Shown here: positions 16,695-41,256 of the stretch, one piece after another
Position numbering within the stretch: the stretch's first letter is position 1
Layout of the letters: every line of letters begins with the position of its first letter
Assembly (NCBI GenBank): GCA_002104945.1
Contig: MCFH01000007.1
Location: 992,001-1,056,000, forward strand
Reading direction: 5' to 3'
DNA: 64,000 nt
Source of the DNA: Piromyces finnis finn
Lineage: Eukaryota; Fungi; Neocallimastigomycota
Made by a program: the position numbers and the translations under genes
Notes under the pieces: generated by a model
The model's database searches: none
The model's input: the letters and a program-made list of their open reading frames with translations, nothing else
What the model was told of the DNA's origin: nothing

Positions 16695-16725
<31 letters not shown>

Positions 16726-17228
16726 TTTTTATTAAATTAATATTTATTATCCAGTATTAATAGGTTAGGTTTTTTATTTTATTATTAAAAGGGTTACGCT
16801 TAAACCATAAATAGAATTTTTTTAAAGGGAATTATTATTTTATAATATAATAATTACCTTATAAAAAATTAAATATTCTTTCTTCTTTTAATTCTACATT
16901 TTTTAATAATTATAATATATATATATATCATTCTTTTATCTTAAATTATAAATATATAAATAAATTACATCACATCAATAATAAAGTAATATAAAGAAAA
17001 TATTAAGATTGCTTGAATCAAAAAATAAAATTTGTATTTATTTAAATAAATCAAGTTAAATATTTCATATTTCTTTTTTTCAAAAAATTAACAAACTTAC
17101 TACAATTCTTTTTCTTCTTCTTCTTCTTATTATTTAAATTTAATTAAAATAAACATTAAAAATATGAATTTTTTAATAAAAAAACATATATTTTATATTG
17201 TGATAGTATTACACTATTAAAAGCTCTA

Positions 17229-17611
17229 GTCGTTCCAGTTTCTACCTTAATTGTTAAGGCATTTCCTTAACATACATAAGGCTTCTGGCTTGACACCGTA
17301 TATACTCTTACATATCCATAGTAGAGACTTTATCCACTAGTTTCCATTGATTAGAGTATATACACAATTAAGTATTGTTTATTTTACCCAATTGAGAGGG
17401 TTGATATTGTTTCCAATATCTGCGGAAGGATGAGGATGATAAATAGTATACGGTCTGGTTCTCAAAGGAACTGTTAAGGACTCGTCCCTACTAGGTTACC
17501 TCGTCTTAGGGTATTGTGAGCGCCAACGCCGAAACCGGTATGGCAAAAGAACACAAAGTTGTGTTCTGTACACTATCATGTGAAAACACATGACAAAGTC
17601 TAAAAAAATTA
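17229..17611 (+). mobile_element. SINE-like retroposon A (tRNA-like head, LINE-derived tail)
   Basis: GC-richer non-coding island. 10-bp TSD AAAAGCTCTA at 17219-17228 and 17612-17621. A-rich tail after AAAGTCT. First 70 nt are 60/70 identical to the head of the element at 34325-34256 (-). Tail matches the LINE at 25886-25939. Confidence 0.85.
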
Positions 17612-20600
17612 AAAAGCTCTATCAAATCCTTAATTGAAGTTTTAGTAAATGAATGAAACTTTTTTTAGAATGTTCTATTTTCTAAAATTTTCTTAACAAT
17701 TAATATCACATGATCATTTGATTGATATATATATTATTTAACATTTTATACCATTTAAATTTACTAAAACAAGAAGCTTTCTAATTACCTAATATTCTTT
17801 AGATTGTTTATAATGATGAGGGTTATTAAGTGATTAATAGTCCATCTATTATATTAGAATTATATATACCCTTCATTTACATAATTTTTATAATTTTTTA
17901 TTTATAATACACACTTAAAAGTAATTAATATTATAGTAAAAACTGTAGATCATATATATACTAATTTTTTTTAGTATATTTTTTTAGATAAATATTTGGC
18001 CATTAAATTTTCATCCATAAAAATATAAACCCTTTTGAATATTAATATATTTTATTTATTATTTTTAAAAGTATAATTGTTTTATATATTTGTTATGTTT
18101 TGTATATTACTTTAAATCATCGATTACAAAAATGAAAACTAAAATTTATTACTATTTAAATTATAATTAATTATATATTATGTTCCATTATTGATATATT
18201 AACATCTAATTTGTTCATTCCATTTAATTTAATGGTAATATTATAATTAATAGTTTCCATTTATTACAATATATTGTAATATATAAAATTAAATTTAAGT
18301 GTTTTACTAAGTATTATAATATTTAAAGTTGTTTATAGTTTTAAGTTTAATTTTATATAAAAAAATTTTGAAAGAAGGCAATTATTCAATTATTTCATGT
18401 TTAAAGAAAAAAAAATATTATAATAAATATAAATCAGAAAAAATGTTATTTATTATTATTAAAAAACAATGAAATTTAAAAGTTTTGTGTTATTTTATAT
18501 TTGTTTTTTGTTATATTATTATCAACAATATTTCATTATTTTTAGTTGCAGTATTCTTTCGATATATCTTTTTTTCTGAATGAAATTAAAAGAAATCATG
18601 TTCTATAAAAATAAATCATAAATTTTAAAATGGAACTTTTTAAAATAAATAAATAATAAAAGTATAATTCATAATTATAATTTTTTAGTTTAAATAAAAA
18701 TGAAAATGTTATAAATTATTTATTTTATTCTTTAGTAAGAACTATGAAATATTTTAAGATATATAGTGCTTTTTTTGTCTTTAATTTTATGATTTCTTTT
18801 AATTAATATTAATAAGTTTAAATTATTATTATTATGTATTTAATAAACCATTTATTATTAATTAAAATTCATTATTTATTAAAATTCAATATATTAAATT
18901 ATTAAATTTTTTTAATTATATTAGAGAACTAACGAATGAATAATATTAATCCTAATTAAAAGCAAACTTTAACCATTGAAACGAACGAATTACTGGCCAT
19001 TCAAATATTTAAATCATAAATTCATAGAATAAATAAATGGTAATTTCATTATTAATTTATTTCAAAAAAAAAAAAAAAAAAGAGATGAAGAATAATTTAT
19101 ATTATTATTAGATTTTGTAAGTTATATAAGTAATTAAAATATATTCTTTTTTTTTTTTATAATATATTAATATAGAAAATTAGAAATATATATTTGATAT
19201 AAATATGAATATATATTAATTAATAATGATTTGTTTTATTGATTTATTATTATTATCATCATTATTAAATTTTAATTAATAATGTAATATAAAACCACCT
19301 TCAACTTTATTAATTAATAAAATTTATAATATCAAAAAATTTAGAAAAACAAAACAAAAATAAAATATGTTAATTCTTTTTTTTTATTTATTTATTTATT
19401 AGAATACTTTTTATTTGTTTTGTTTTTGGTTATTTTTTTTAAAGAAAAAAAAAAAAATAATAATACAATATTTTTTTTTATTTATATTATATTAACTAAA
19501 TAATAAATAAATAATTATATAAATTTATTACTAACATTTAATAGTTATTATAGAGTTCTTTAATATAATATAAAAAGAAATGTTTATATACCAAAAATAA
19601 GAATAAATCATTATTATTGATTAACTTTTTAAAATCATTGCAAAACAAATTTTTAATATAATAATAATAATAATAATAAAACAAAAAACAAACAAACAAA
19701 TAAACAAATATTTATTATTAAAATATTTATTTTATTTTTTTTTCAATGTTTATGTTAATAATTTAAGCGAAAAATTTTGAAATAGAATTTCAAAGAAATA
19801 AAGAAATACAATTGTTTTCGATTTATTTAATACACACACCCACACACAAAAAAGTTTATATGTTAAATTGAAAATAATTAAGAAATTCAATAAATATTAT
19901 TTATACATTGAATATAAATATCTTTATAAATTTATTAATAATTATTTTTTCGTATATATAGAATAAAAAAAGGAAATTAAAATATAATATTTATTTTATA
20001 TAATATCATTTAAATATATATTAAAAAAACAAAAAAATAATTATAATAGAAGTAGAAAGATAAAAGTATTAGATATCAATAAAAATATAGAGAAGTTTAT
20101 AAAAATATAAACAATAATATATATATAACGAAAGAAAACAAAATATATCAACAAAAGTATTATCTATTAATTATGAATATTTTTACAAAACATCTTTAAA
20201 TACCTAAATTATTTATATACCATACTATTGATTTTAATAGAAAACGAAGAAGAAATAAACATTTAGTTTCTTCATTATAATAGAATTATAAATAATTAAA
20301 AAAACAAACAAATCATTTTTTCATAATCTTCAATTATTTAATAATAACCAATATTTATTTATTATTCTTATTTATCAATTTATATGTGATTAAAAGAAAA
20401 TATTATAAAATCTTTAATATTGAAATTTTGAATCAAATTATTAAAATATCGAATACTTAGATATTTTTAATATATATAATATATATAATATATAAGAAAC
20501 TTCAAAAAAAAAAAAAAAGAGGTATTTATAAAATAAAAATCAAATAATTATTTATTTATACAATAATAAAACTTTTTTTTCTAAAAAAAATAATATTGAG

Positions 20601-20715
20601 AAACTATTTTAATTTTAATTAAATATTTATTTTATTGTTTTTTATTTTAAAATAATAACATATATCTTCAAATCAAAAAGATAATTAATTTTAAATTGAA
20701 TAAAAATAAAATGAT

Positions 20716-23700
20716 ATGTCTCAATTAACAAACTCGTCCAATCAATTTAAAATAGATAAAGAAACTGGTAATGATAATGTATTTATAAATATTTATAATA
20801 CTAATAAAGAAAGTGAAATCATATCCCCTTCAACGACGGTAAATGTAAAATCCAATAATGTAACTTCACATTCTTCTATAGATATAAGTACATCATCTGA
20901 AGTACTATCAACGCCCAACAACAACAACAACAACAATAATAATAATAGTAACAACATAAATATCATAGAAAATCCTTTTGAATCACCACCAACAAGCAGT
21001 GATTCTTCACCTGTACTACTTAGAAATAATATAAATACATCTATTCCTAATATCAATAATTCATTTATTAATAATCATCAAAATCAAGATAAAACAATAA
21101 ATATTGATATATTTAATTCAAATGAAAACCCAATAAATAATAATTTAGATATTAATCATAATACTTCCATAAATGAAGCTACTAATCCTCAGGAATCAAA
21201 ACAATTTAATGTTAATAAGGAAGAAAGTAAAGAAAATCTTAATACCAATAATAGTATTAGTGTAAATACAAGTATTTTAGAAAATAATATAAAAAATGAA
21301 AAATCATTTTCATCTAAAAAGACGGTTAAAACAGCAATAACGTTTGACTTAAATAAAAAGAAAAGAGTAGAAAAAAATTATATTGAAAATGAAAGAAGCG
21401 AAAAAAAGAAAGATAAGGAAAAGGTATCAGAATATTGCCCGGTGTGTAAAGCAAAAGCTTCATATATGTGTTCCTCTTGTGGTCCAGTTATATTTTATTG
21501 TTCACAATCATGTCAAATTGCTCATTGGCCAGAACATCGTTTAGTATGTAAAGGTGTAAAGAAACACAGATCTTATGTAGAACGAAAAAAAACAGAATCA
21601 ATTTTTGGTGAAATTATTGACCCTACTATCGGAAGTGATGGTATTGTAGGAACAAGAAATGTAGCACAATTAATTAATTTAAAACGTAGTAGAACGGACA
21701 ATGTGAAATCAAAAACAAATTCTGTGTTATCTGGTCGTAAAAATTCAACAGCTCGTCTTATAGATAATGCCATTGAGGAAGAGGATGAAAGTGAAGAAGA
21801 AAATAATTATACAGATAATGAAATAGAAGTAAATGATTCTAATGCCAGTATTCCTAATACTTCAAATAATAATGATAAAAGTAAAGATGAAAATCATGAC
21901 AATTCTCTTACTGGAATAAAAACAGAAAATGATTTTATTAATAAAAATAAACTAAAAAATAGTGATGAAAATATAGTTAATTCATTTTCTATACCCACAA
22001 GTCCAATTTCATCTGATATTGTCGAGAATAATAACATAGTAGAAAATCCGGTGAAACAGGATGTTTCTAATAATTCAAAAAAAAATAATAAGAAAAGAGG
22101 AAGTTATCGTAAGAGAACTTCAATGATAATTTCTAAAGCTCAAGAGGATGAAGAATTAATAGAAGATTTAAAATTTTATATTAAGCAAATATTTTTAATT
22201 ATTAAACCAGTACTTCTTTGTATTTTATTAACTATTATTTGGGTTAAGTTGTCAAATACAAAAAATATGAGGGTTGAAATAAAACCAGGATATGTTGCTG
22301 TAAGAGGTGACTATTTTAAAGACGATAGTGTTGCTGTTGATGGAAATAGTTTTGTTACTACTATTTTTTTAAATTTTAAAGACGCTATTTCATTTATTTT
22401 GTAAGTATATATATAATATTTATTTTACATTTATATAAATAATTTAAAATTAAAGCTGGCTAGTTATTAATAAAACATTTATATATAATTTTATTTCTGC
22501 ATTTATTATATATTAATATATTAAATCTATTTTCAATATATAATATAATAATATATACATATATAATTTTTGAATATTTTCAATATATATATATAATTAT
22601 TCATAAAAATGTACAATTGTTATTTATTTATTAATAGTCAAATGATTGCAGTTACTGTGGTAGTAGCAATATTATTCATTTTCAGTTGTGTTAAAACATT
22701 AACAAGTCTATATATTGTATTGATGTTAGGTCTCCTTTCTATATTTTCCTATATTACACTGCAAAGAATTGTTATGATATACAATATACCAATTGATATA
22801 TTTTCCACTGCTCTAATTATTTGGAATGTTGTAGTTGTAGGGTTGGTAGTTATATTTTGGAAAGGTCCACTTTCAATTCAACAATATTACTTAGTGTTTG
22901 TTAGTTCTTTGATGGCTTTAAGCTTATCTCAATTTAGTGAATGGACAACATGGATAATATTAACTTTATTAGCTGTTTGGGATTTAATTGCTGTCCTTTG
23001 TCCGTTTGGACCTCTACGACTTCTATTGAAACATTCTGAAGAAAATCAACAAGAAATTCCAGCATTACTATACACATTGATGGTATGGATAATGGCTACC
23101 CCAGCCTCACCTAAAATCAAAAATAAAGAAGATTCAGCTTCACAAAATGTAAATAATACTACTCTAGCAATTGAATCTTCCAATAAAGAAGAATTAGTTA
23201 AAGAAAATCCTTCCAAACAAAAATCGATTGAAACCTCTTTTACTACTGAAGTACTAAGCGTTTTTAATATAAAAAATGTGACTTCTCCACCAATATCTCC
23301 AGTGCAACAAAGTTCAAACTCACTCTCCGTTAGTAATAGAAACAGTAATATTTCAAATAACGGTGGTAATAATCTTACTATTACCACAAAACATCAAAGT
23401 TCACGACCTCTTTCAGTATCATCAGTATCATCTGGATCATTTACTCTCACTAGAAAAAAGAATCCTACCCTTAAAAGATATCCTTCTAATGGAAGTAGTG
23501 TTAGTGGTGTTCGTAATCGGCCTTCTTCTCCAAATGGATCATCTGTTGTTCTCACTAATAGACCTCCAAGTGTAAATCATTCTAATATTAGATCTTTTTT
23601 TTCAGGATCTATTTCAGACGAAAATGCCTCAACAGCAATACTTTTCCAAGATAATAGTAATAGTTATAGTTATGATAGTTTGAAACGTGGTCTCAGTCGT

Positions 23701-24729
23701 AATAGTTCTATAGATTCTCAATTTTACAAAAAACGTATTGATAAAAAATATAAATATCCAAATTCTAATTCTGAAAGTTCTCGTAAATATGGACATTCTG
23801 AACGTCGTCTTAATCGTAATCTTTCTCACGGTAGTCAGCATTATTATCCTCATTATTATAATCATCGAAGCCCTTATGCTTCTCATCATAGTACGGACAA
23901 TGAATCCTCTGTTCTTTCTGATGACACTAGCTCTGACTTATATACAAGAGAAGCATCCTTTAGTTCAATAGCACTTCTTGTAAATAATAGAAGTCAAACA
24001 GGTAGTTTTAATGATAATTCAGGTCATCATAATCATCAGCATAGTCATAGTCACCATCATCGTAGTCATCATCATCATAGTCATCATCATCATAATGATC
24101 ATGGATCTCTTTCAGTAAATAGCCAAACTAGCAGTATAACGAGTGTTGTAGATCGTTCACATTCTCATCGTCATAGTTCTCGTTATTCATCTATAGGGCA
24201 TACTTCAGATTTCTTTGGTCGTTTTTCTGATGATGATTATCGGAAGAAGAAACGGAAAAGAGAAAAACGTCTTCGTAAAGAAAAAGAAAGAAGAGAACGT
24301 CAAAGAAGAGAAGATGAAGAAGAAGAAGCAGAACGTAATGGTATTAAATTAGGTCTTGGAGATTTTGTCTTTTATTCTGTTCTGGTAGCTAAAGCAGCGA
24401 GCCAAGATTGGATGACTACTATTAATTGTACTATAGCTGTCATTACTGGACTCACTATTACTATTTTCTTATTAGCTGTATTAAAGAAGGCTTTGCCTGC
24501 CTTACCTATTAGTATTGCGTTTGGTTTAATCTTTTATTTTACTTCAAAACATTTAATTGGTGTTTTGATGGATAATGCTATGTATGTGTCCTATTTTAGT
24601 ATGGATAGAACACAACTTTATCATTTGTATAAAGAATGTATTGATGAATTAAGATTATTATTCCAAGATCAAATGATTGCTTCACGACTTGATATTGGTA
24701 AAAAGTATATGGGCTATTTTCATTTTTAA
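20716..24729 (+). CDS. PSEN: Presenilin-family (A22A) intramembrane aspartyl protease with N-terminal zf-MYND; join(20716..22400,22638..24729), 1258 aa
   Basis: A phase-2 GT-AG intron (GTAAGT at 22401, TAG at 22637) joins the two ORFs in frame. LAVWDLIAVLCPFGPL (Asp at 22981), KLGLGDFVFYSVL (Asp at 24361), PALP and nine hydrophobic segments are present. MYND motif CPVC..CSSC..YCSQSCQIAHWPEHRLVC at 21436-21549. Confidence 0.93.
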
Positions 24730-25032
24730 TTTTTTCATATATATAAAAGATAAATAAACTAGTAATAAATAAATAAAAATAAATAAAAATAAATAAATAA
24801 AAAAAAAAAATAAAAAAATCTATTTTTAGATTTTCCGTCATTACTACATCATTCTTTCTTTATTATTTTATTTGTATTAGCATTAGTATTATTTAAAGAA
24901 AGAAAGATATAATAAATAATTACCGCAAATTCAAACTCCAAAAAAAAAAAAAAATAAAATAAAAAATAAAATAAATACATATATATAAAATATATATATA
25001 ATAAAAATTAATATTATATAAAGTTGTTGTTT

Positions 25033-26255
25033 AAAACATTGGGTTGATCATTATGAAAATTTTGTATCTGATGTTCTAAATCATAGCTTAAATTATAGTT
25101 ATTGGGAAAGAGTCTTCCATTTTAATTATATTAATCAAATAGCATGGAAGATTAATGGTTCCATTTCTATTGAAAAAATTAGAAATACTGTTCTGTCAAT
25201 GAAGAATAATAGGGCTCCAGGTCCCGATGGTATCTCAATTGAATTCTTCAAAGCTTTCTTTTTGTAACGAAGAACTAGAAAAAGAACATAGGTCTGCTGG
25301 AAATTGTATTAAATTAATTTTCAATGAAATCTGGAATGGTTATTAGAGAACATGATTAAAATAATAGTAGACTAAATAATGAAAGTAAAGGTCACCGATA
25401 TACTAACCTAACAACAAATTCTATAATTCAAATCGCCTAATGCATATTGATCTCAACAAACCTCACTTAAATTTAGGAATTACTTGGATTATTTGTATTC
25501 GATGCGATTATGAAAACATTACCAGAATCGCCATTGCCAGTAATAGAGTTACACCTGACTGTCTTTGTATCTGTCCATGTTGCGAATAAGATAAACCATC
25601 TTTTTATCATTGGATTTTAGAATGTTCTGCATTCTCTGAATACAGAACTTCTTTACTTATCCTTCTTGACGATCTTTTTACCTTTTTTCATCACTTACTC
25701 CCTGAAATGGAAGTAAAAAAAACTATTTATAACTATATTTTTACGTTCCTTCTTGGTGAAACTTTAGCGTCTCATGTTTCACATGTAGAGGGTCTCGCAG
25801 CTTTTCTTACTAAAACAATCCCTATCATTAGTACCTCAATGAAGCTACTTTTTGATAGGTTTAGTAAGACATCTAACGTAATCAAGAGTGTCGATGTCAC
25901 ACCGATATGGCAAAGGAACATTCCTAATGTTCCGTACACAGGGTTCAATGTTAATATTTCTTTGAATGAATGTGAAAGTTTATTAGACACCACACTATCA
26001 TACCTGATCTTCTCTTTTTTTTTTTCATTTAATTTATTAGGTAGGGATCAATTCCACACAGTACGAATTGCAGAGTTCATTAAACTTTTATGCAACTTTA
26101 ATAATTATTTTATTTTATAGTTATATATATATGATGATGATGATGATGATGATATTTATTTATTATTTATTATATCAATATGTATTATCATGTAAAATCA
26201 CAAATTAAATAAATAAATACAAGAAGTGTATTCTCTTCCTAGTCTAAAAAAAAAA
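25033..26255 (+). mobile_element. Decayed, 5'-truncated, internally deleted non-LTR retrotransposon (LINE) fragment
   Basis: 15-bp TSD ATAAAGTTGTTGTTT at 25018-25032 and 26256-26270; ends in AGTCT(A)n. Encodes KNNRAPGPDGISIEFFKAF (start of the RT region, about 25200-25260), then with stops a C-terminal CPCC-x8-H-x4-C knuckle (about 25575-25630) and ORF 25707..26120. Confidence 0.9.
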
Positions 26256-26425
26256 ATAAAGTTGTTGTTTTTCAAAGAGAAAAAGAAAAAAAGATTAGCA
26301 TTAAAAATTATGAGTGGATATATCTCTTATTTAATAAATTAAATGAAATAAACATCAAGTATGGAAATAATTTCATTTATAAAATTATTGAGTTAAAATT
26401 ATAATGAAATGAAAAGCAAAAACAA

Positions 26426-26457
<32 letters not shown>

Positions 26458-27087
26458 AGAAACAATACTATAATAAAGTTAATTTTTAAATAAAATATAT
26501 AAATTTATGGACTGTAAAAATAAAAATATATAAAAATAATATAAAGAAACAAAATGACAAAATAAAGACTTTTTTTTTTTTTTTTTTCTATTATTGTTAT
26601 ATTTTTATTTTTATTTTTTAAAGAAAAAAAAAAAATTAATAAATTAAAATGAATACAAAAATATTTAATAGATTGATGGTAGTTTTATTAATTATTAAAT
26701 ACTAATTTTATTTTTTTTTTTTTTTCTACTTTGTTTTTTTGTTTGTTTATTTGTTTTTTTTATTTGTTTATTTATTTGTTTGTTTGCTTGTTTTGTTTCT
26801 GTTTTTGTTCTATTTTTTTCTTTTGTTAATTTATTTGTTTTTATCAGTTTTGTTATCATTTAATCATTTAAAAAAATACAATGATGAGTGTGTATTATGC
26901 ATCAATAATTGAATGTAAAAATTTTATTTTTTGATTGATTAAAATCAAAATGTTATGAGAGAATATTGCTTCGGATTGTAAGTATAATAATTAATTTATA
27001 AATAATAAGAAAATAAAATAAAAAAAAAAAAAGAAAAAGAAAGAAAGAGAAAAGAGAAAAGAAATATAAAAGTATAAATAGATCAAA

Positions 27088-29142
27088 TTACAAATCTATG
27101 ATTTCTCTTTTTTTTGTAGTTTGAGCATTATCTTTTTTTTCAATAAATGAATTTTTCATAGATTCTACGGGTTCAGAACGCTTAGGTATAATACCCAAAA
27201 AACGGAAATGCTCTTCATCAGCTATTGCTCTAGCCCAAACACTCTTAATATTATTCCTACGTTTATCTGGAATAAGAATCTTTTCATGATCTTGGATAAT
27301 ACCTGTTTTTTCATCATAAATAACTCTTACACCACTCTTGTTTTCAATTTTACTATGCTCACGAATATCATGAATAAACTTCAATACTTCATACTCATAA
27401 ACATCACGGTGAACAGCAAAATGCATAACATGATCACTACCTTCAAAATAAGCACGACGAATTAAAAAACCATTCTTTTGTAAATTGTAAATGTAAGGTT
27501 CAATTAAGTCTGGACAAATGACACGGTCTCCATTACCATACATAAACATGTAAGCCATATGTTTTGGTACATTATAAAAAGCAGGATAGTAGATATTTAA
27601 AAGATACTTAGCGATAGAAGGTTGACGTACAAAGATATAATAGAAATAACAAATCATTTTACTGAGAGTTGGAGAATAATGTGTATGCTTTATACCAAAA
27701 TATTTCATACATTTCATTGAAGTAATACCAGCAGTGATACCACGAGTAATAACGTCTTGTGTTAAAAGTGAAGGTCCAGAATCCATAATTGCTGCTTCCA
27801 TACAATAATAGAATTTTTCATAATCTTCAAATTCTTTTCTAGCCTGACGATATTCATTATTTAATTTGATCATTTGTTCATCATTTTTCCATTCACCTTT
27901 CTTTTCCTTATCATTTAAGAAGTCTAAAAATTCATTTTCAGTCATGGTAGTACAATTTTGATTCGCCTTTTCTACAACATGTCTTTCAGAAATAATTGCC
28001 TTACTATTAGATTTTTGTTTAACGAAAAATTCAGAGGAAGTTACTGTAGAAGAAGAAGAAATCACAGTAATTGAATCAGAAAGATTTAGTTTCTTTAAAA
28101 TATTTTGCTCCCTGATCTTTACTCTCCTTTTAAATTTTCTAAGATTCACTTGCAAAACATAGGTAAAGTGAGCAAAAATATAAGAACCATTATCACTAAA
28201 GGTATGAAAAATAATTTTACATTCTTCACCTTTTGCTTGACGTTCACACCATAATTTAAATAATTGCTTCATAAGATGTTCATTTTTAATATTTAAAATT
28301 TTTGGAACTAATAAAAGTGGAGTAGGAGAAATATAAGCTAACACTGGATGACCAATGTTAGAATAAAGCTTTATATATTTCTTAAGATGTTTTGGATGAC
28401 AATTCCACCATCCCAATAATACCATTAATTCTCTTGGTGAACGATCCATGGAACAATCACAAAGGGTAGTAGTATCCTTAGCATCTTTTTCTGGTTTTAT
28501 AAAAACAAATCCACGACTTAAATTTCTTCTATTATATTTTTGTTGAATACAACGATGACTAAAGAATCTATGTATAATACGATCAAGAAGAGATAATTTT
28601 TTATCATCTTCATCAATTTCTAATGAATCATAATAAGAAGTTTTTGAAATGCTTCTAAAATAATTATAATGTTCAAATTTACGAATTTTTTGATAAATTT
28701 CTTTTTCTTTTTCATATTTAGCAATTTGTTCATCAGTAAGAGGTGTAGATAATACTTCATTTTTTGGTTGATAATTAATTTTTTCATTTGATTTTGATTC
28801 TTTTGAAAAAAGACTTGAAATTCTAAAATATTCTTTTCTATAATAGGGGGTATAATTAAAGAATGGAGTAGAAATAAAAGTCTGATCTAGTGGATTTGAT
28901 AAATGAGAATTTGGAAAAAAAGATAACGAATTCTTCTTTGTTAATTCAATATTACTATGAGAAGAACGTAATGTATGGATGTAATGAATTGATAATTTAT
29001 TGTTATTATTATTAGAAACTGTAGATATAATTTTAGGTGTAGAATATCTTAATGAATGAATCAACTGATGATATAAACTAGTTTGTTGGCCTATCTTCTT
29101 TACTAGAAAATAGTTACTATTTATTATTTTATTGAATTCCAT
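27088..29142 (-). CDS. DUF829/TMEM53-like alpha/beta-hydrolase-fold protein with a long N-terminal extension
   Basis: 684-aa ORF. Motifs VLLGWWNC..HLKKYIKLY, IFHTFSDNG, IMDSGP, FMYGNGDRVI and FEGSDHVMH follow the DUF829 pattern. Confidence 0.75.
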   Translation of the reverse strand: MEFNKIINSNYFLVKKIGQQTSLYHQLIHSLRYSTPKIISTVSNNNNNKLSIHYIHTLRSSHSNIELTKKNSLSFFPNSHLSNPLDQTFISTPFFNYTPYYRKEYFRISSLFSKESKSNEKINYQPKNEVLSTPLTDEQIAKYEKEKEIYQKIRKFEHYNYFRSISKTSYYDSLEIDEDDKKLSLLDRIIHRFFSHRCIQQKYNRRNLSRGFVFIKPEKDAKDTTTLCDCSMDRSPRELMVLLGWWNCHPKHLKKYIKLYSNIGHPVLAYISPTPLLLVPKILNIKNEHLMKQLFKLWCERQAKGEECKIIFHTFSDNGSYIFAHFTYVLQVNLRKFKRRVKIREQNILKKLNLSDSITVISSSSTVTSSEFFVKQKSNSKAIISERHVVEKANQNCTTMTENEFLDFLNDKEKKGEWKNDEQMIKLNNEYRQARKEFEDYEKFYYCMEAAIMDSGPSLLTQDVITRGITAGITSMKCMKYFGIKHTHYSPTLSKMICYFYYIFVRQPSIAKYLLNIYYPAFYNVPKHMAYMFMYGNGDRVICPDLIEPYIYNLQKNGFLIRRAYFEGSDHVMHFAVHRDVYEYEVLKFIHDIREHSKIENKSGVRVIYDEKTGIIQDHEKILIPDKRRNNIKSVWARAIADEEHFRFLGIIPKRSEPVESMKNSFIEKKDNAQTTKKREIIDL

Positions 29143-30163
29143 TTTTATTGTTTTTTTTTTTTTTTTTAATTTGCAAGTATATTATGATAAAAAAACTAAT
29201 TTTTGATTTTTACTCTATTAAACTTTTATTTGTTTTATATATTAAATTATTTTTAAACTTTCAAATATCAATTCTTTGGTGTTTCAATATATATATTCGA
29301 CTATAATATTTCAAACTTTTTTTTAAAATTATAAATACTTTTTATTGGTTTTTTTTTTATGTTAATTTAATTATTTTTCTCAAACATTAATTTTTAATTG
29401 CTATTATTAATTTAATTTAAAATTGAATTTAATTTTAAAATTTCAATATATAAAAAGGAATATGTTAGAAAAAAAAAAAAATTCTTAAATTTTATATTAT
29501 AAAATAATACAATTTCTCGGTTAAAATGAACAAATATATATAAAAAATATACTGCTTATTATACAAATTAATCAATACATACCATAAAAGTTTACTATTT
29601 ATATATTTCATTTATAAATATATTGTTATCTATTATTATACTCTTCTACACAGATGTAAATGTCCAAGGCAAAAAAAGTAAATGAAAAAAAAGTATTTCT
29701 CGAAAAATAAATAAGTATTATGATAAAAGAAATAATAATAGAAATACTTCTTTTCTCTATTTATCAGAAAATAATAATGAGAAAGGAGATATTTTATATT
29801 TTAAATTGCTGTTGCTATTTTAAAATAAAAATAATAATAAAATAAAATCTTTTATATATATATAGTTGAAAATTGATTTAATTTATTAAATGAGGTTGTT
29901 TTTTTTTTTTTCTTAAACTAAAAAAGGCATAATTTTTTAAATATAACACTTTAAATAGCTTTAAAATTAACAATAGTGATAATAAAAACTTAATTCCCTT
30001 TTTCTTTATTTTTGTTATTAATTCTATTATTGAAATGATTATTTATCAACTTTATCTTTTTTCATTGAAAAATTTTGTTCAAAAAAAAAAAAGAAAGAAA
30101 TAAAATTATTTTATTGTATATTATAAATAGCAATAACTATTTCTCTTTAAAAAATAACAATAA

Positions 30164-30196
<33 letters not shown>

Positions 30197-30958
30197 TTTA
30201 TGAACTTTTTCTATATCAATTTTCTATCCTTAATCAATATGTTTAAAACCTGCATAATACTTTCTAAAACAAAGATTAAATAAAATTTAAATTTTTTTTT
30301 TTTTTTTTTGATTTTATTAGTTATTTAGGTTCAATTATTTTTGATAATTTAAAAGAATTATCCAGTAATTTAATGTATTGATGAATAATATGTTTTAAAT
30401 TAAGTTATTTTAAATTACAATAATCTGAATTTTTATTATTTATCTAAAGGATTAATTCTATAAAGAAAAGTGTAAAAGAAAATATAAAATTGTTTTAAAA
30501 CAAAATGGTTTTATAAACTATAATTCTACTATTATTATTTTAAAAAAGGGCAATTGGATTAGAAGAAATAGTGATTCTATATAATTGGTATTATGAATAC
30601 AAAAAAAAAAAAAAAAACATTTATTTATTTTAATATCAATATCATTTTGAAATAAAAAATTTTAATCCACAAAAGTATTAAATAAATAGATTAACATTCA
30701 AAAAAAAAGAAAGTATCTTTATTAAAAAATTTTGAGCTTAGTCAAAAAAGGTTTTTATAAAATAATAGATAACTAATAGAAAAAATATAAGAAAGAATAC
30801 TTATTTTAGTGAAATTTTTTGGAATCGAATTAACGATATAAGAACAAATAAAAGTTAATTAGAATAATAAAAATAAAAATAAAAAACAATATTATATAAA
30901 AGTATAATAAACAACTATTACTTATTTATTAAATATTTATATTTATATATTCATTTAC

Positions 30959-31025
<67 letters not shown>

Positions 31026-32100
31026 TTGTTCATATTTTTATTATTGAATTCATTGGCTCCTCTTTTTATAATAACGGGATTTTAAAAATTATCCAAATTA
31101 ATAAATATTATTATTATTATTATTACTTTTGATAAATTGAAATATTATTGTATTGATATTGATTTATTTAAAAACAATATTAATTTTATGTAGGAATTAT
31201 ATAATCATGTTTTACTTTTTTCTTCATTAATATTTTTTATTCAACTATTCTATTGATCCACATTTTCCATAGCTATAATTTACTATAAATATAATATTAT
31301 TTGCTTGCATAAATCTGCTTTAACATCCAATTTATCCACCAAATAAAACTATTTCCAAAACAAAAAAGAATTATTAATTACCAAGAAATAGATTTTATTA
31401 TTAAATAAAGTTTTATTTCTGATAAAGATAACATCATACATTATAATAATAATTTTAATATATTATATTATATAAAATAATATTAAAGATATAATCAATT
31501 AATTTCAATAATTATAATAATAAAGTTTGCAAACAATAATAAATTCAAAGTTTCTCCACATTATAAATTATTTAATATTGAAAATATATTACCAATATAA
31601 TTTAATATCTCCCACTATTAATTACTATGTTTATCTTAATGTATACAAAGGAACGTATGTTTACATTCATACATTTACATTAGAATATTTATATTTTAAA
31701 ATTTATCAATATTAATTGTTTAATTATCATTTTTTATATTATTCAAATTTATAAAATTTAAACAAATATTACGGTTTTTACTTTTTCATGTATTAAATTT
31801 AAATTCGTTTTTAAAAAAAATGGAATTTGAAAATTAAAAAGATTTAATAAATATGCATTTTTTTATCCAATTACTTTTCTATTAATTTTATTGATGTTGG
31901 TGTTGGTGTTGGTGTTGTTGTTGATGTTATATGTATAATCAGAATAAGTTCCAAAATATGGTATATAAAATTTTAATATAATATATACTTTTTTTTTTCA
32001 ATAAGCTGTAAAAAATGAAGTATTTATTGTTATAAAATTATACAATTAACGATTTTTTAATTTATAAAATCAAATAAAATATTTTATTAATTACATTTTT

Positions 32101-32787
32101 TTATTTCTTTTCTTTTTCTTCCTGTTCTCTTTGTTCTTCTTTTAAAAATTCAATAACATCATTTTGTTCAGTCTGAGTTAATTGTTGGAGATCTTTTTTA
32201 ATAATGGTTTTATTACCAGAAGAATTACATTGTTGTCTCTTGAAATAATCTTCAATAGTACCAAATTTATTCAGAGAATCATACCAACCAAGATGATCAG
32301 CAATTAAATGTAAATTTTTACATTTATCACAACGAATAATGACAACACCTTCATAATAAGATTTTTTTGATATTAGTTTATAGGAACGATTATTACATTT
32401 TTTACATGTAAAGCCAATTAAAAATTTTTCTGTATCGATTTTTACTTTATTTTGTTCAATATTAGATTTATTATCTAAAGAATAATTAGTTTTCGAAAAA
32501 CATTGGACAGATTGATAATTCCAATTTTTATGTTGATTAAATAAAGTATTGCTTAATGAATTAACAATATTTAGTTCTTGATGAGTAAAATTTGATAATT
32601 TAAAAGTATAATTGTTCGGGTATAAATTAGTATTTAAAGATAAATTTCTTGAAATTGGTTTTAATCCAGAAATGCAATGGAAATTTAAATTTTGAAATGA
32701 ATTTCTAACATCTTTTACAAAATGTTTATTTAATGAAGAATTATTCAAAAATCCCTTTTTAATTGAATTACAAGTTATGGTTTGCAT
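32101..32787 (-). CDS. ZIM17: Zim17/Tim15/Hep1 zf-DNL chaperone of organellar Hsp70
   Basis: FTCKKCNNRSYKLISKKSYYEGVVIIRCDKCKNLHLIADHLGW is a DNL zinc finger. The long basic, hydroxylated N-terminus resembles a presequence. Confidence 0.92.
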   Translation of the reverse strand: MQTITCNSIKKGFLNNSSLNKHFVKDVRNSFQNLNFHCISGLKPISRNLSLNTNLYPNNYTFKLSNFTHQELNIVNSLSNTLFNQHKNWNYQSVQCFSKTNYSLDNKSNIEQNKVKIDTEKFLIGFTCKKCNNRSYKLISKKSYYEGVVIIRCDKCKNLHLIADHLGWYDSLNKFGTIEDYFKRQQCNSSGNKTIIKKDLQQLTQTEQNDVIEFLKEEQREQEEKEKK

Positions 32788-33740
32788 TTTATTAAATTAT
32801 TTGTATACTATATATATTGAAAATACTTAATATTATAAAGATTTCTATATATTTTTTTATTTTTTATTTTTTTATTCTTATTATTCTTCTTATTATTATT
32901 ATGCTTCTTTAAAAAGGAAAAAATATTTATGTTTGTTTTTTCACCTTTTTTTAAAATCGAAAATCTAATCCTTTATCATATAGTGTTAGAAGGGTTAGGA
33001 TTTATTATAAAAAATTAAATTGTTTTTTTTTTCTTATTATTATTATTCTTATTATTAATTAATAATAATGATATCTTTAAAACTTTAGTGGTTTGATTAA
33101 AAAAATGGTTTTATTTATTTTTGCTTACATAGCAAAATTTTATAAAGAAACATTAAGTAAATATTTCAATATTATCTTTCTCTTATAACTTTTATAAAAT
33201 AATTCTTAAATTGTCAATTTACAAATTTATTTATAATTTTTAATTAAAATTTTACACTTTATTACAATTTGCTTAAATAGATGAAAACATATAAAAATAA
33301 ACAATAGAATATTATTTATTGTCATAATAAAATTATGAAATATCAACTCTTATTTTTATGACAATCGATAAAGAAGATAATTTACAGAAATATAAATATA
33401 ATAAATAAAATGCACTCTAAAATGGATAATATTTTATATTTATGATTTATTTAGAAAACGTATAAACCAAGAAAAATTTTTAAATTTTATGAAATAATAA
33501 TATAGAAAAATCAAAGATTAATTTTAATAATATTTAATTCTAGTTATAAATAAATTTTATTTCTTTTAATTATTATTATTAAATCTGTATTATTTTGCTT
33601 ATAATTCTTTTTATGTTGTAATAAACTACCTAAAAACATTGCCTTATTTTTTTTTTTTGATTATTGAATTTTTTTTTTTTGAATAATCGGACAAAATCGG
33701 AATCTTCTATATATACATATAAATATTTAAACCAACTGCG

Positions 33741-33741
<1 letters not shown>

Positions 33742-33793
<52 letters not shown>

Positions 33794-34325
33794 TTCCGAG
33801 TGCATTTCTCCCATCGATCAGAGTTAGCTCCAATGGTGGTTCTTAGAGAAACGTTGGCTCATTCCTATTGCTAGGTGGTTGTGACCCTCCTGGTCTGTCA
33901 TACTGTTTCTTCAGCTTCGACGCTCACTTAATCCATGTACATTAGATGCATGTCGTTGTACGATATTTCACAACTACAATGCTAAGCCTCTTATAGTCAA
34001 TTTGATCACGTGTCAACCGCCCCCTAATGTTTACACTTAAATTGATTAAGGAATATTATGTGTTTTTGGCATAGCCTAAGTCACCACTTATTAAGTTCTA
34101 ATTTGGAATGTACCATGTACACTAGACCCTCTCAGGCCGGCTAGACGAGTGTTATTATCATAGTAGTAAATTAGAAAGTTCATTTATACTTACCTGAATA
34201 TCATAACCCAACCCATGGCAAACCCAGTGGGAAAATCCACAGGCACTGACATCTGCGGGGTCGAACCAGAAGCCTTATGTATGCTAAGGAAACGCCTTAA
34301 CAACCAGGATAAAAACTGGAACGAC
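33742..34325 (-). mobile_element. SINE-like retroposon B (tRNA-like head, LINE-derived tail, 49-nt poly(A))
   Basis: TSD ACCAACTGCGC(TT) at 33731-33741 and 34326-34338. 49-T run at 33742-33790. B-box-like GGTTCGACCCC at 34267-34257. Head shared with element A. 33885-33925 is 36/41 identical to LINE 40221-40261. No ORF. Confidence 0.92.
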
Positions 34326-39740: not shown

Positions 39741-39930
39741 TTTATTATACTTCTTTATCTTTATTATTTTCTTATTCACAACTTAATTGAAAAACATGTT
39801 ATTAGTTTTATGCCTATAAAAAATATTATATTTTAAATGTTTTTAACTCATTTTCAATCCTCTTTAAAAAACTTTAATAAAAAATAAAAATTTTTAAAAA
39901 ATATTTTTTCTTCTCTATAATATATTTAAA

Positions 39931-40615
39931 TTTTTTTTTTTTTTTTTTTAACGGCATCAAATATTTTAAACTTTATTATTAATTTAATTAAAATTATAAT
40001 ACATGTAATTAAAAATTAAATATAAAAAAAAAAAAAATATGTTTAAATAAACACAAATGAATAAAAATTGGGTATAATGTATTCTAGTAATTTTAATTAA
40101 AGTAAGAAAGCCACTATCATACTAAAGTATAATAATTGTATTTGACTTCCAATGAGACACCGAGCCAAAAATCAAAATTTTGTCATGGAACAAAATTATG
40201 ATCTCCATTGGTTACGCTGGCCCTCCTGGCCTGTCTTACTGTTTCTTCAGTATTGACGCTCTTGGATGTTGCTTCAAACCTTTTGAACATTGACCATTGC
40301 TGGCCAATAGCAAAAGGCATGATTTTGGTTAGAAGTTCCGCGGTTACCGTCAAGAATGGTGTTCCTTCGTTAGTACCAGATTGAATCTGACGCTTACAAA
40401 GTTCTTTCCATTCCCTTGAATTGTAATTAATATTGTTAAAACTTCTTCCCCCGAGAAGGAATTTAAATATTTTACTGCACACACTAGAATAATCATACAC
40501 ATTAATATTCACCGGATTATTAGAACTATTACTATCATCAACTAAATTACTATCTAAATTAGAATTATTATCATCACTATTGCTATCATTACTAATATTA
40601 TTATTTCTATTACTA
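39931..40615 (-). mobile_element. 5'-truncated LINE 3' fragment (ORF2 C-terminus plus 3' region)
   Basis: 16-bp TSD CTATAATATATTTAAA at 39915-39930 and 40616-40631; 19-nt poly(A) at 39931-39949. The ORF ending at 40183 (KIFKFLLGG...AELLTKIMP...MFKRF..KSVN) aligns by eye with the LINE ORF at 25707 (YIFTFLLGE...AAFLTKTIP...LFDRF..KSVD). Confidence 0.82.
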
Positions 40616-41256
40616 CTATAATATATTTAAAATCTATTTCACTAATAATAGCATTATTTTAAAAAATATTAATAAAAATAAAAGTAATGATAATATATTT
40701 TATAATAAATACTATAAGTATCATTTAATAACCTTTAAAATATATAAATCTTTAAATATTTCCGTCCTTTTTAAAACTACTATTTTAAATAATTATCACA
40801 TCTAATTCTAAATTCTAAAACATATTTTCTTAATAAATTCTTTTTATTGTAACTTCCCATTCTAATTTCTAAAACATATTTTTCTCAATAAATTCTTTTT
40901 TATTACAATTTCTCAAATTCTATTTTATTTTTTATTATTCCATATTTTCTAAATACTACACACATATATTACCAACAACTTCTCTATTTACTTTTTAACA
41001 TCCTTAATTTTTAAAAACTTATATACATCTATATTATACTTTCCAAGTTACCTATATTTATTCATTATTTCCAAAATTTAATAAAATATAACCCGTATTT
41101 TTATTTAATACCAATTTATTGTACTTAATTTAACTTCTTGATGTTAAGAATTATTGAACACTTTAATAAATCAACGAAAGATAAATAACAATTATTTTAT
41201 GTGTTTTTTATTAGATTTATATATTCTGATAAATACAATATATCTGATCACATAAC

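Follow-up and report, generated by a model that had tools for sequence, protein, structure and literature searches.

Can one and the same 5' module be carried through a genome on tails taken from different long interspersed nuclear elements (LINEs)? The question is raised by two short retroposons, here called A and B, that lie in a 64,000-nucleotide stretch of the genome of the early-diverging anaerobic gut fungus Piromyces finnis (Neocallimastigomycota). The whole of this stretch is referred to as the window, and adding 992,000 to a window position gives the record position on contig MCFH01000007.1 (assembly GCA_002104945.1). A preliminary description, made from the letters and their open reading frames (ORFs), had interpreted A and B as short interspersed nuclear elements (SINEs) in which a single head with tRNA-type promoter motifs had recruited two LINE partners by tail swapping. 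The analysis reported here leans, by a modest degree, towards A and B being representatives of two SINE-like families with a shared head, unrelated bodies and tails of different LINE lineages, joined by exchange. Of the earlier interpretation, the retroposed and multi-copy nature of the elements and the lineage specificity of their tails were upheld, and the head was found again in a third family; the tRNA-type nature of the head was not borne out by ARAGORN and Rfam, both of which were negative.

Two retroposons with a common head

Elements A and B are non-coding, A-tailed and flanked by target site duplications (TSDs), as initially described: the longest ORFs encode 39 and 46 amino acids, respectively, the TSDs are 12-13 bp long, and the 3' ends are formed by AGTCT followed by seven A residues in A, and by a run of 49 A residues in B. 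The start proposed for A (17229) is correct; the end had been placed at 17611, which overruns the element by 3 nt because the 3' TSD begins at 17609, so that A ends at 17608. With lengths of 380 and 584 nt (below approx. 700 bp) and such short ORFs, both elements have the size and lack of coding capacity of SINEs in the SINEBase sense, and the TSDs along with the A-rich 3' ends are those of retroposed DNA. The G+C content of the two elements is about 39-42% versus 19% for the window, which is extremely AT-rich throughout (G+C content of 11-29% in 2-kb steps). The elements, their flanks and their heads are located as follows.

17217-17228, + strand: 5' TSD of A, TTAAAAGCTCTA, which recurs downstream as TTAAAAAGCTCTA
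17229-17608, + strand: element A, 380-nt non-coding retroposon made of head, unique body, tail assigned to the LINE1 lineage and A7
17229-17298, + strand: shared head of A, with the degenerate B-box GGCTTGACACC; 60/70 to B
17609-17621, + strand: 3' TSD of A, TTAAAAAGCTCTA (TSD length, 12-13 bp)
34325-33742, - strand: element B, 584-nt non-coding retroposon made of head, body, tail assigned to the LINE2 lineage and A49
34338-34326 and 33743-33731, - strand: perfect 13-bp TSD AAGCGCAGTTGGT flanking B
34256-34325, - strand: shared head of B, with the B-box-like GGTTCGACCCC at 34267-34257 and a T5 run at 34315-34311

The two heads start with the same base and are identical, without gaps, at 60 of 70 positions, precisely as had been claimed (blastn within the window, E 3.5e-18). 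Over the 70 nt that follow, identity falls to 23/70, which is the chance level. A sequence with the appearance of a perfect 5' splice donor, attcag/gtaagt, was also observed in the body of B (34199-34188, - strand).

Tails from two LINE lineages

The two elements with which the tails had been compared, LINE1 and LINE2, are genuine LINE fragments, as proposed, both 5'-truncated and bounded by TSDs of 15 and 16 bp, respectively. They represent lineages whose C-termini are just 29% identical at the amino-acid level. At the coding end of ORF2 both LINEs contain a two-hairpin module of approx. 60 nt, in which a tetraloop hairpin of 3-4 bp is followed by a spacer and by a second hairpin. Covariance model R1 was trained on four LINE1-lineage LINE copies only, and model R2 on five LINE2-lineage LINE copies only, with no SINE in either set. 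The 3' ends of further copies were gathered from loci L025, L026-30, L031, L032, L033 and L034 (the last containing LINE1b) for the LINE1 lineage, and from L015, L016-24 and L033 for the LINE2 lineage. The features of interest in the window are the following.

25033-26255, + strand: LINE1, 5'-truncated and internally deleted; 15-bp TSDs at 25018-25032 and 26256-26270; module at 25880-25945
17512-17577, + strand: two-hairpin module of A, assigned to the LINE1 lineage (model R1, 30.5 bits)
17577-17601, + strand: terminal hairpin of A, CATGTG-AAAA-CACATG followed by ACAAAGTCT, just 5' of the A tail
39931-40615, - strand: LINE2, 5'-truncated; 16-bp TSDs at 39915-39930 and 40616-40631; module at 40266-40200, the end of ORF2
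33864-33930, - strand: two-hairpin module of B, assigned to the LINE2 lineage (model R2, 47.3 bits; blastn, 38/44 to LINE2)

For the tail of A, the identities to LINE1 previously counted (18/20 and 11/12) were exact, with blastn alone yielding a non-significant E value of 0.067. The claim holds in spite of this weak direct match because the LINE-only model R1 recognizes the tail significantly and because A has the terminal hairpin and the GTCT end of that lineage as well. R1 scores LINE1 at 86.8 bits and the tail of A, with all pairs standard, at 30.5 bits (E about 7e-6), the latter being the sole other significant match in 64 kb; no match to B is obtained, even at E<=10. The match between the tail of B and LINE2, initially given as 36/41, is slightly longer (38/44; blastn E 2.5e-9). 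R2 scores LINE2 at 83.9 bits and the tail of B at 47.3 bits (33930-33864, E 1e-14), and matches neither A nor LINE1. The same model detects the tail of the third family, C, described below (42.1 bits), and, in L033, a C-like tail truncated at its 5' end (44.2 bits). Profile hidden Markov models agree with this reciprocal assignment, the nhmmer profile M1 finding the tail of A with E 1e-4 among the three SINEs and 0.021 among all the DNA compared. Between the two lineages the models are reciprocal, R1 hitting A and not B, and R2 hitting B and not A.

The predicted structure is also reflected in the pattern of substitutions. In the R1 matches, 89.9% of the cells are paired, as opposed to 36-49% when the partners are slid, and at four pairs both partners are substituted; one of 500 shuffles reached the same covariation score, on an alignment fitted to the R1 model itself, which is to the advantage of the structure. 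The second stem is formed by GAACAC/GTGTTC in A, by GGAACAT/ATGTTCC in LINE1 and by GGAATT/AATTCC in L025 and L026. As noted initially, A and LINE1 both finish in AGTCT(A)n, and the hairpin with its GTCT(A)n terminus is conserved in three of the four LINE1-lineage 3' ends (LINE1, L026 and L032), while LINE1b ends in GTAT(A)n. The spacing differs between the partners: module and terminus lie about 270-300 nt apart in the LINE and abut in A, and the distance from the module to the poly(A) is 200-330 nt in the LINE versus 25-75 nt in the SINE.

A common 3' terminus of B and LINE2 was also considered and discarded, the shared GTT(A)n being too short to count. A LINE origin of either body was likewise rejected, as neither the body of A nor that of B has blastn similarity to any of the LINE DNA compared. 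On the basis of the reciprocal model searches, derivation of the tail of A from the LINE1 lineage and of that of B from the LINE2 lineage, each with specificity for its own lineage, is supported.

Copy number, transcription and the standing of element A

Copy depth was estimated by aligning the contigs of the genome itself and one RNA run to positions 16700-18100 at >=80% likeness, with the depth of 134 of the contig showing zero differences to the window as the single-copy baseline. Over the head bins the summed depth was 20,478 and 52,629, namely, 150-390 times that of the single-copy contig, values that are ratios of summed contig depths and not a genome-wide count. Where contigs extend beyond nt 70 of the head, B-type sequence follows, both in DNA and in RNA. 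The head is therefore present in hundreds of copies, mostly in the B form, and B is transcribed, the RNA depth over the head being about 4000 (one contig, 5239) and continuing as B in the one RNA run. Thus, the head is not confined to the two copies of the window, as this depth and the occurrence of family C demonstrate, and the elements are dispersed and multi-copy, as SINEs are, by contig depth rather than by census.

The depth over the body and tail of A is much more limited (193-904) and is due to five further contigs, each with a depth of 134-145 and roughly 90% alike. Taken together, A-type bodies reach some 4-7 times the single-copy level, in about 4-6 paralogous contigs of single-copy depth. 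One A-type contig bears head, body and tail, and two others join the head straight to an A-type tail, so that a head is linked to an A-type tail in at least three contigs besides that of the window. The zero-difference contig spans window positions 16736-17560. A-type elements form a small, older family, which is absent from the RNA run examined.

These contigs are relevant to the view that A arose as a single chimeric retrocopy, or through an error of assembly, and resembles LINE1 by chance, as might be surmised from the direct blastn match of its tail to LINE1 (E only 0.067) and from the lack of A-type RNA in the one RNA run. This view is contradicted by several independent single-copy contigs, approx. 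90% alike, that bear the body and tail of A, in some cases with the head, by the zero-difference contig over 16736-17560, and by model R1, which was built on LINEs only and picks the tail of A as its only other significant match in 64 kb; the terminal hairpin and GTCT end common to A and the LINE1 lineage also speak against it. It is considered highly improbable.

A third family and the nature of the head

Joint Genome Institute (JGI) metagenome contigs were scanned for an 18-mer that A and B share. It matched 13 of them, two of which (L005 and L013) were relevant, the other contigs corresponding to a bacterial gene. Scans for further head copies gave none in IMG/VR, and none, or 17 chance matches, in GTDB genomes. 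The two relevant contigs contain copies of a third family, named C.

L005:107-521 and L013:573-976 (- strand): copies of family C, on AT-rich contigs of JGI sample 3300010976

Family C is approx. 415 nt long. Its start base and first 26 nt are identical to those of the A/B head, and over the whole head it is 83% identical to B, with unrelated sequence downstream. All three families cease to resemble one another at a common position near nt 70. The L013 copy was observed to be without an A tail, and both copies may have short flanking duplications (TATTTGA-like and TATTA-A-like). If these duplications are real, and with the L013 copy as it is, the C element may end at ...ACCAG with no poly(A).

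The heads of A, B and C are predicted to fold alike, into a long hairpin of the form GUCG..CCAG...inner hairpin...CUGG..CGAC, with z-scores of -3.97 for A, about -4 for B and only -1.0 for C. In the inner hairpin of C, which is capped by a cUUCGg loop, three two-sided changes with respect to A/B preserve the pairing (U-A to C-G, A-U to U-A and G-C to C-G). Moreover, C keeps approx. 7 further nucleotides (71-77) that can pair with nt 4-10 and are followed by CA, in a manner similar to an acceptor stem. Because of the common predicted hairpin, the pairing-preserving changes and this extra end pairing, the head has the appearance of an RNA module under constraint, some 70-77 nt in length. As to promoter motifs, a B-box-like sequence had been described in both heads of the window. 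In B it is canonical: over 64 kb, in which 0.00 matches to the consensus GGTTCGANNCC are expected, GGTTCGACCCC is the only one. A B-box-like GGTTCGANNCC is present in the head of C as well; in A the motif is degenerate. The head probably supplies the transcription start and promoter functions, and the elements that bear it would be transcribed by RNA polymerase III (Pol III).

The common point of divergence, which is close to the size of a small RNA, and the retention in C of approx. 7 extra nucleotides that pair with the 5' end are also what one would expect if the head were a single cellular Pol III small RNA, captured separately by template switching onto different RNAs with LINE tails, so that the families would have a source gene rather than a SINE ancestor in common and no exchange of tails need have occurred. 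Template switching onto small RNAs is an established source of chimeric retrocopies, as a by-product of LINE activity. However, neither the window nor the fetched loci were found to contain a head-only source locus, and no RNA family known to Rfam matches the head. Furthermore, since the 3' approx. 7 nt of C are missing from A as well as from B, an identical truncated capture would have had to take place twice. For these reasons this origin of the head seems quite unlikely.

A different explanation starts from the observation that each element joins the head to the module of one LINE lineage only, and from the failure of ARAGORN and Rfam to recognize the heads as tRNA. On this view the head would be the start of the LINEs themselves, conserved between lineages as an internal promoter or as the beginning of the 5' untranslated region (UTR). 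A and B would have arisen by internal deletion from a LINE1-lineage and a LINE2-lineage parent, respectively, with both ends of the parent retained in each, and swapping would not be needed. The LINE copies compared are all 5'-truncated, and therefore a LINE 5' UTR could be the source of the head. Nevertheless, one would hardly expect lineages that are 29% alike in protein, and unalignable in their 3' DNA, to be 86% identical over 70 nt at their 5' ends. A canonical B-box at the position expected of a tRNA-type promoter and the acceptor-stem-like arrangement of C (nt 4-10 pairing with nt 71-77, then CA) also point away from a LINE 5' end, as does the absence of any similarity between the bodies of A and B and the LINE sequences compared. 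No head adjoins any LINE fragment in approx. 130 kb of fungal loci, which is a weak point since the copies found there are nearly all 5'-truncated. On the whole, we regard a LINE 5' terminus as a rather unlikely source of the head.

The reading of A and B as two SINE-like families with a shared head and exchanged tails has, in turn, to be set against several observations that weigh on the other side. The B-box of A carries two mismatches to the consensus, a convincing A box was not seen in the heads, and the T5 run at nt 11-15 of the head of B could terminate Pol III. A tRNA, 5S or 7SL origin of the head found no support: according to ARAGORN, neither the window nor the metagenome copies contain a tRNA (blank at the default, 90% and 80% thresholds, with noise only at 70%), and Rfam gave nothing at the gathering score, and no tRNA, 5S, 7SL or U6 at E<=10, on A, B and C. 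Thus, the heads neither fold nor score as a tRNA, in contrast to those of tRNA-derived SINEs. To these points must be added that RNA depth over the body of A was zero in the one RNA run, that abundance is expressed as a ratio of contig depths, and that the compared LINEs are all 5'-truncated, as mentioned above.

A more specific proposal, which is put forward as a tentative possibility, is that the head is a non-tRNA constrained hairpin with a B-box, portable among at least three families, that pairs up with the hairpin handle of whichever LINE is active. If so, the poly(A)-tailed LINEs of anaerobic fungi would recognize their templates stringently, lineage by lineage.

Proposed route of mobilization

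With the preferred assignment of two families (three when C is counted) with exchanged tails, each family would combine the structured head of approx. 70 nt with a body of its own and with the near-3' two-hairpin module of one LINE lineage, A carrying the LINE1-lineage module plus the terminal hairpin-GTCT end, and B the LINE2-lineage module. The reverse transcriptase of the matching LINE would recognize the module on the SINE RNA, and target-primed reverse transcription by the same LINE would generate the genomic copy, with its A tail and duplications of 12-16 bp. The combinations of heads and tails would most likely stem from the exchange of modules, for example by template switching of the LINE enzyme, rather than from slow divergence. 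We infer that mobilization takes place in trans, by the matching LINE, and that exchange is at the origin of the combinations.

LINE copies and other features of the loci

In LINE1 itself, at 25033-25400, an N-terminal piece of the reverse transcriptase (...APGPDG...) is fused to the C-terminal part, the middle of ORF2 being gone, either by deletion before insertion or by rearrangement afterwards. A second LINE1-lineage copy, LINE1b, is found upstream of the window (L034:19600-21338, equivalent to window -2940 to -4677) and is 82-90% identical to LINE1; its reading frames are broken, and it leaves the fetched DNA toward its 5' end (4.7 kb upstream reached). A long ORF2 with a LINE1-lineage C-terminus was not found by an exhaustive protein search, and a 16-kb contig with a match to a reverse transcriptase fragment contained LINE pieces only, and no full-length LINE.

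Two further loci are of interest with respect to annotation. In the approx. 4 kb of L033:10300-14400 (GCA_016946835.1, JACVTC010000170.1) both lineages are represented by 5'-truncated LINE tails, at least six in all, with several A runs of 26-39 nt scattered among them. The annotation treats this region as a single 610-aa gene (P0022), and a nest of retroposons, or an insertion hotspot, seems to have been swallowed by a gene model. In L031:219-6677 (GCA_002157105.1, KZ151248.1) the 890-aa leucine-rich repeat (LRR) gene model P0013 has at its end the C-terminus of a LINE1-lineage ORF2, which may be either an exonized LINE tail or an annotation chimera.

The window also contains ordinary eukaryotic genes, among which are those for a presenilin, a biotin synthase, a sulfate permease and an 'angel'-type nuclease, the latter with its nearest named homologues in Anaeromyces and Neocallimastix. 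A MYND zinc-finger ORF lies immediately upstream of the presenilin ORF, which has a long insert (window 20716-24729).

Significance and comparison with known systems

The elements amount to a natural experiment on template choice by LINEs, in which the hairpin handles of two LINE lineages occur behind one and the same head, with covarying stems. If the pairing is functional, poly(A)-tailed LINEs would discriminate among templates through a structure that lies inside their own coding sequence, and non-autonomous elements would follow the turnover of LINEs by exchanging modules. On the practical side, the elements belong in the repeat libraries used for anaerobic-fungal genomes, where LINE tails are already found inside gene models (P0013 and P0022).

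A modular build is well known in SINEs of animals and plants, CORE- and V-SINEs being further examples. Mosaic SINEs with multiple LINE partners are established in animals, as in the case of bivalve HCD-tRNA SINEs (PMC11481361), and SINE bodies and tails derived from LINEs have been described (PMC5786205), so that the kind of element discussed here is already known. The fungal elements resemble mosaic SINEs in the head, body and tail organization, in the association of one 5' module with tails of different LINE clades and in the sharing of tails between families. They differ from them in that the head is unrecognizable as tRNA, 5S or 7SL, in that the LINE-derived part comes from the coding end of ORF2 and not from the 3' UTR (with the addition, in A, of the LINE terminal hairpin), and in the host, which is an early-diverging anaerobic fungus.

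The eel pair UnaSINE1/UnaL2 was reportedly shown by Kajikawa and Okada in 2002 to be a stringent SINE-LINE pair with a shared 3' stem-loop. There, as here, SINE and LINE have a conserved 3' RNA stem-loop in common, with covariation that preserves the stem, and the structural hallmark of a stringent partnership, namely, a specific 3' RNA structure common to SINE tail and LINE, is present in the fungal elements according to R1, R2 and the covariation. Unlike the eel pair, however, the fungal elements end in poly(A), as do the 'relaxed' LINEs of the L1 type, and they are known from sequence alone; moreover, their module lies 200-330 nt from the poly(A) in the LINE and 25-75 nt from it in the SINE.

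Among fungi few SINEs are, to our knowledge, known at all. Known ones, such as Mg-SINE/MGSR1 of Magnaporthe, Foxy of Fusarium and EGH24/Eg-R1 of Blumeria, are from Ascomycota and are, like the elements described here, short, non-coding, A-tailed fungal retroposons flanked by TSDs. The initial impression that no SINE had been described from the group to which Piromyces belongs agrees with a search of the literature, with Repbase, Dfam and SINEBase outside its scope, in which no SINE description was found for Neocallimastigomycota. With respect to these known systems, what is new is the A-type family, along with the reciprocal test by which models built on LINEs only assign the two tails to different LINE lineages.

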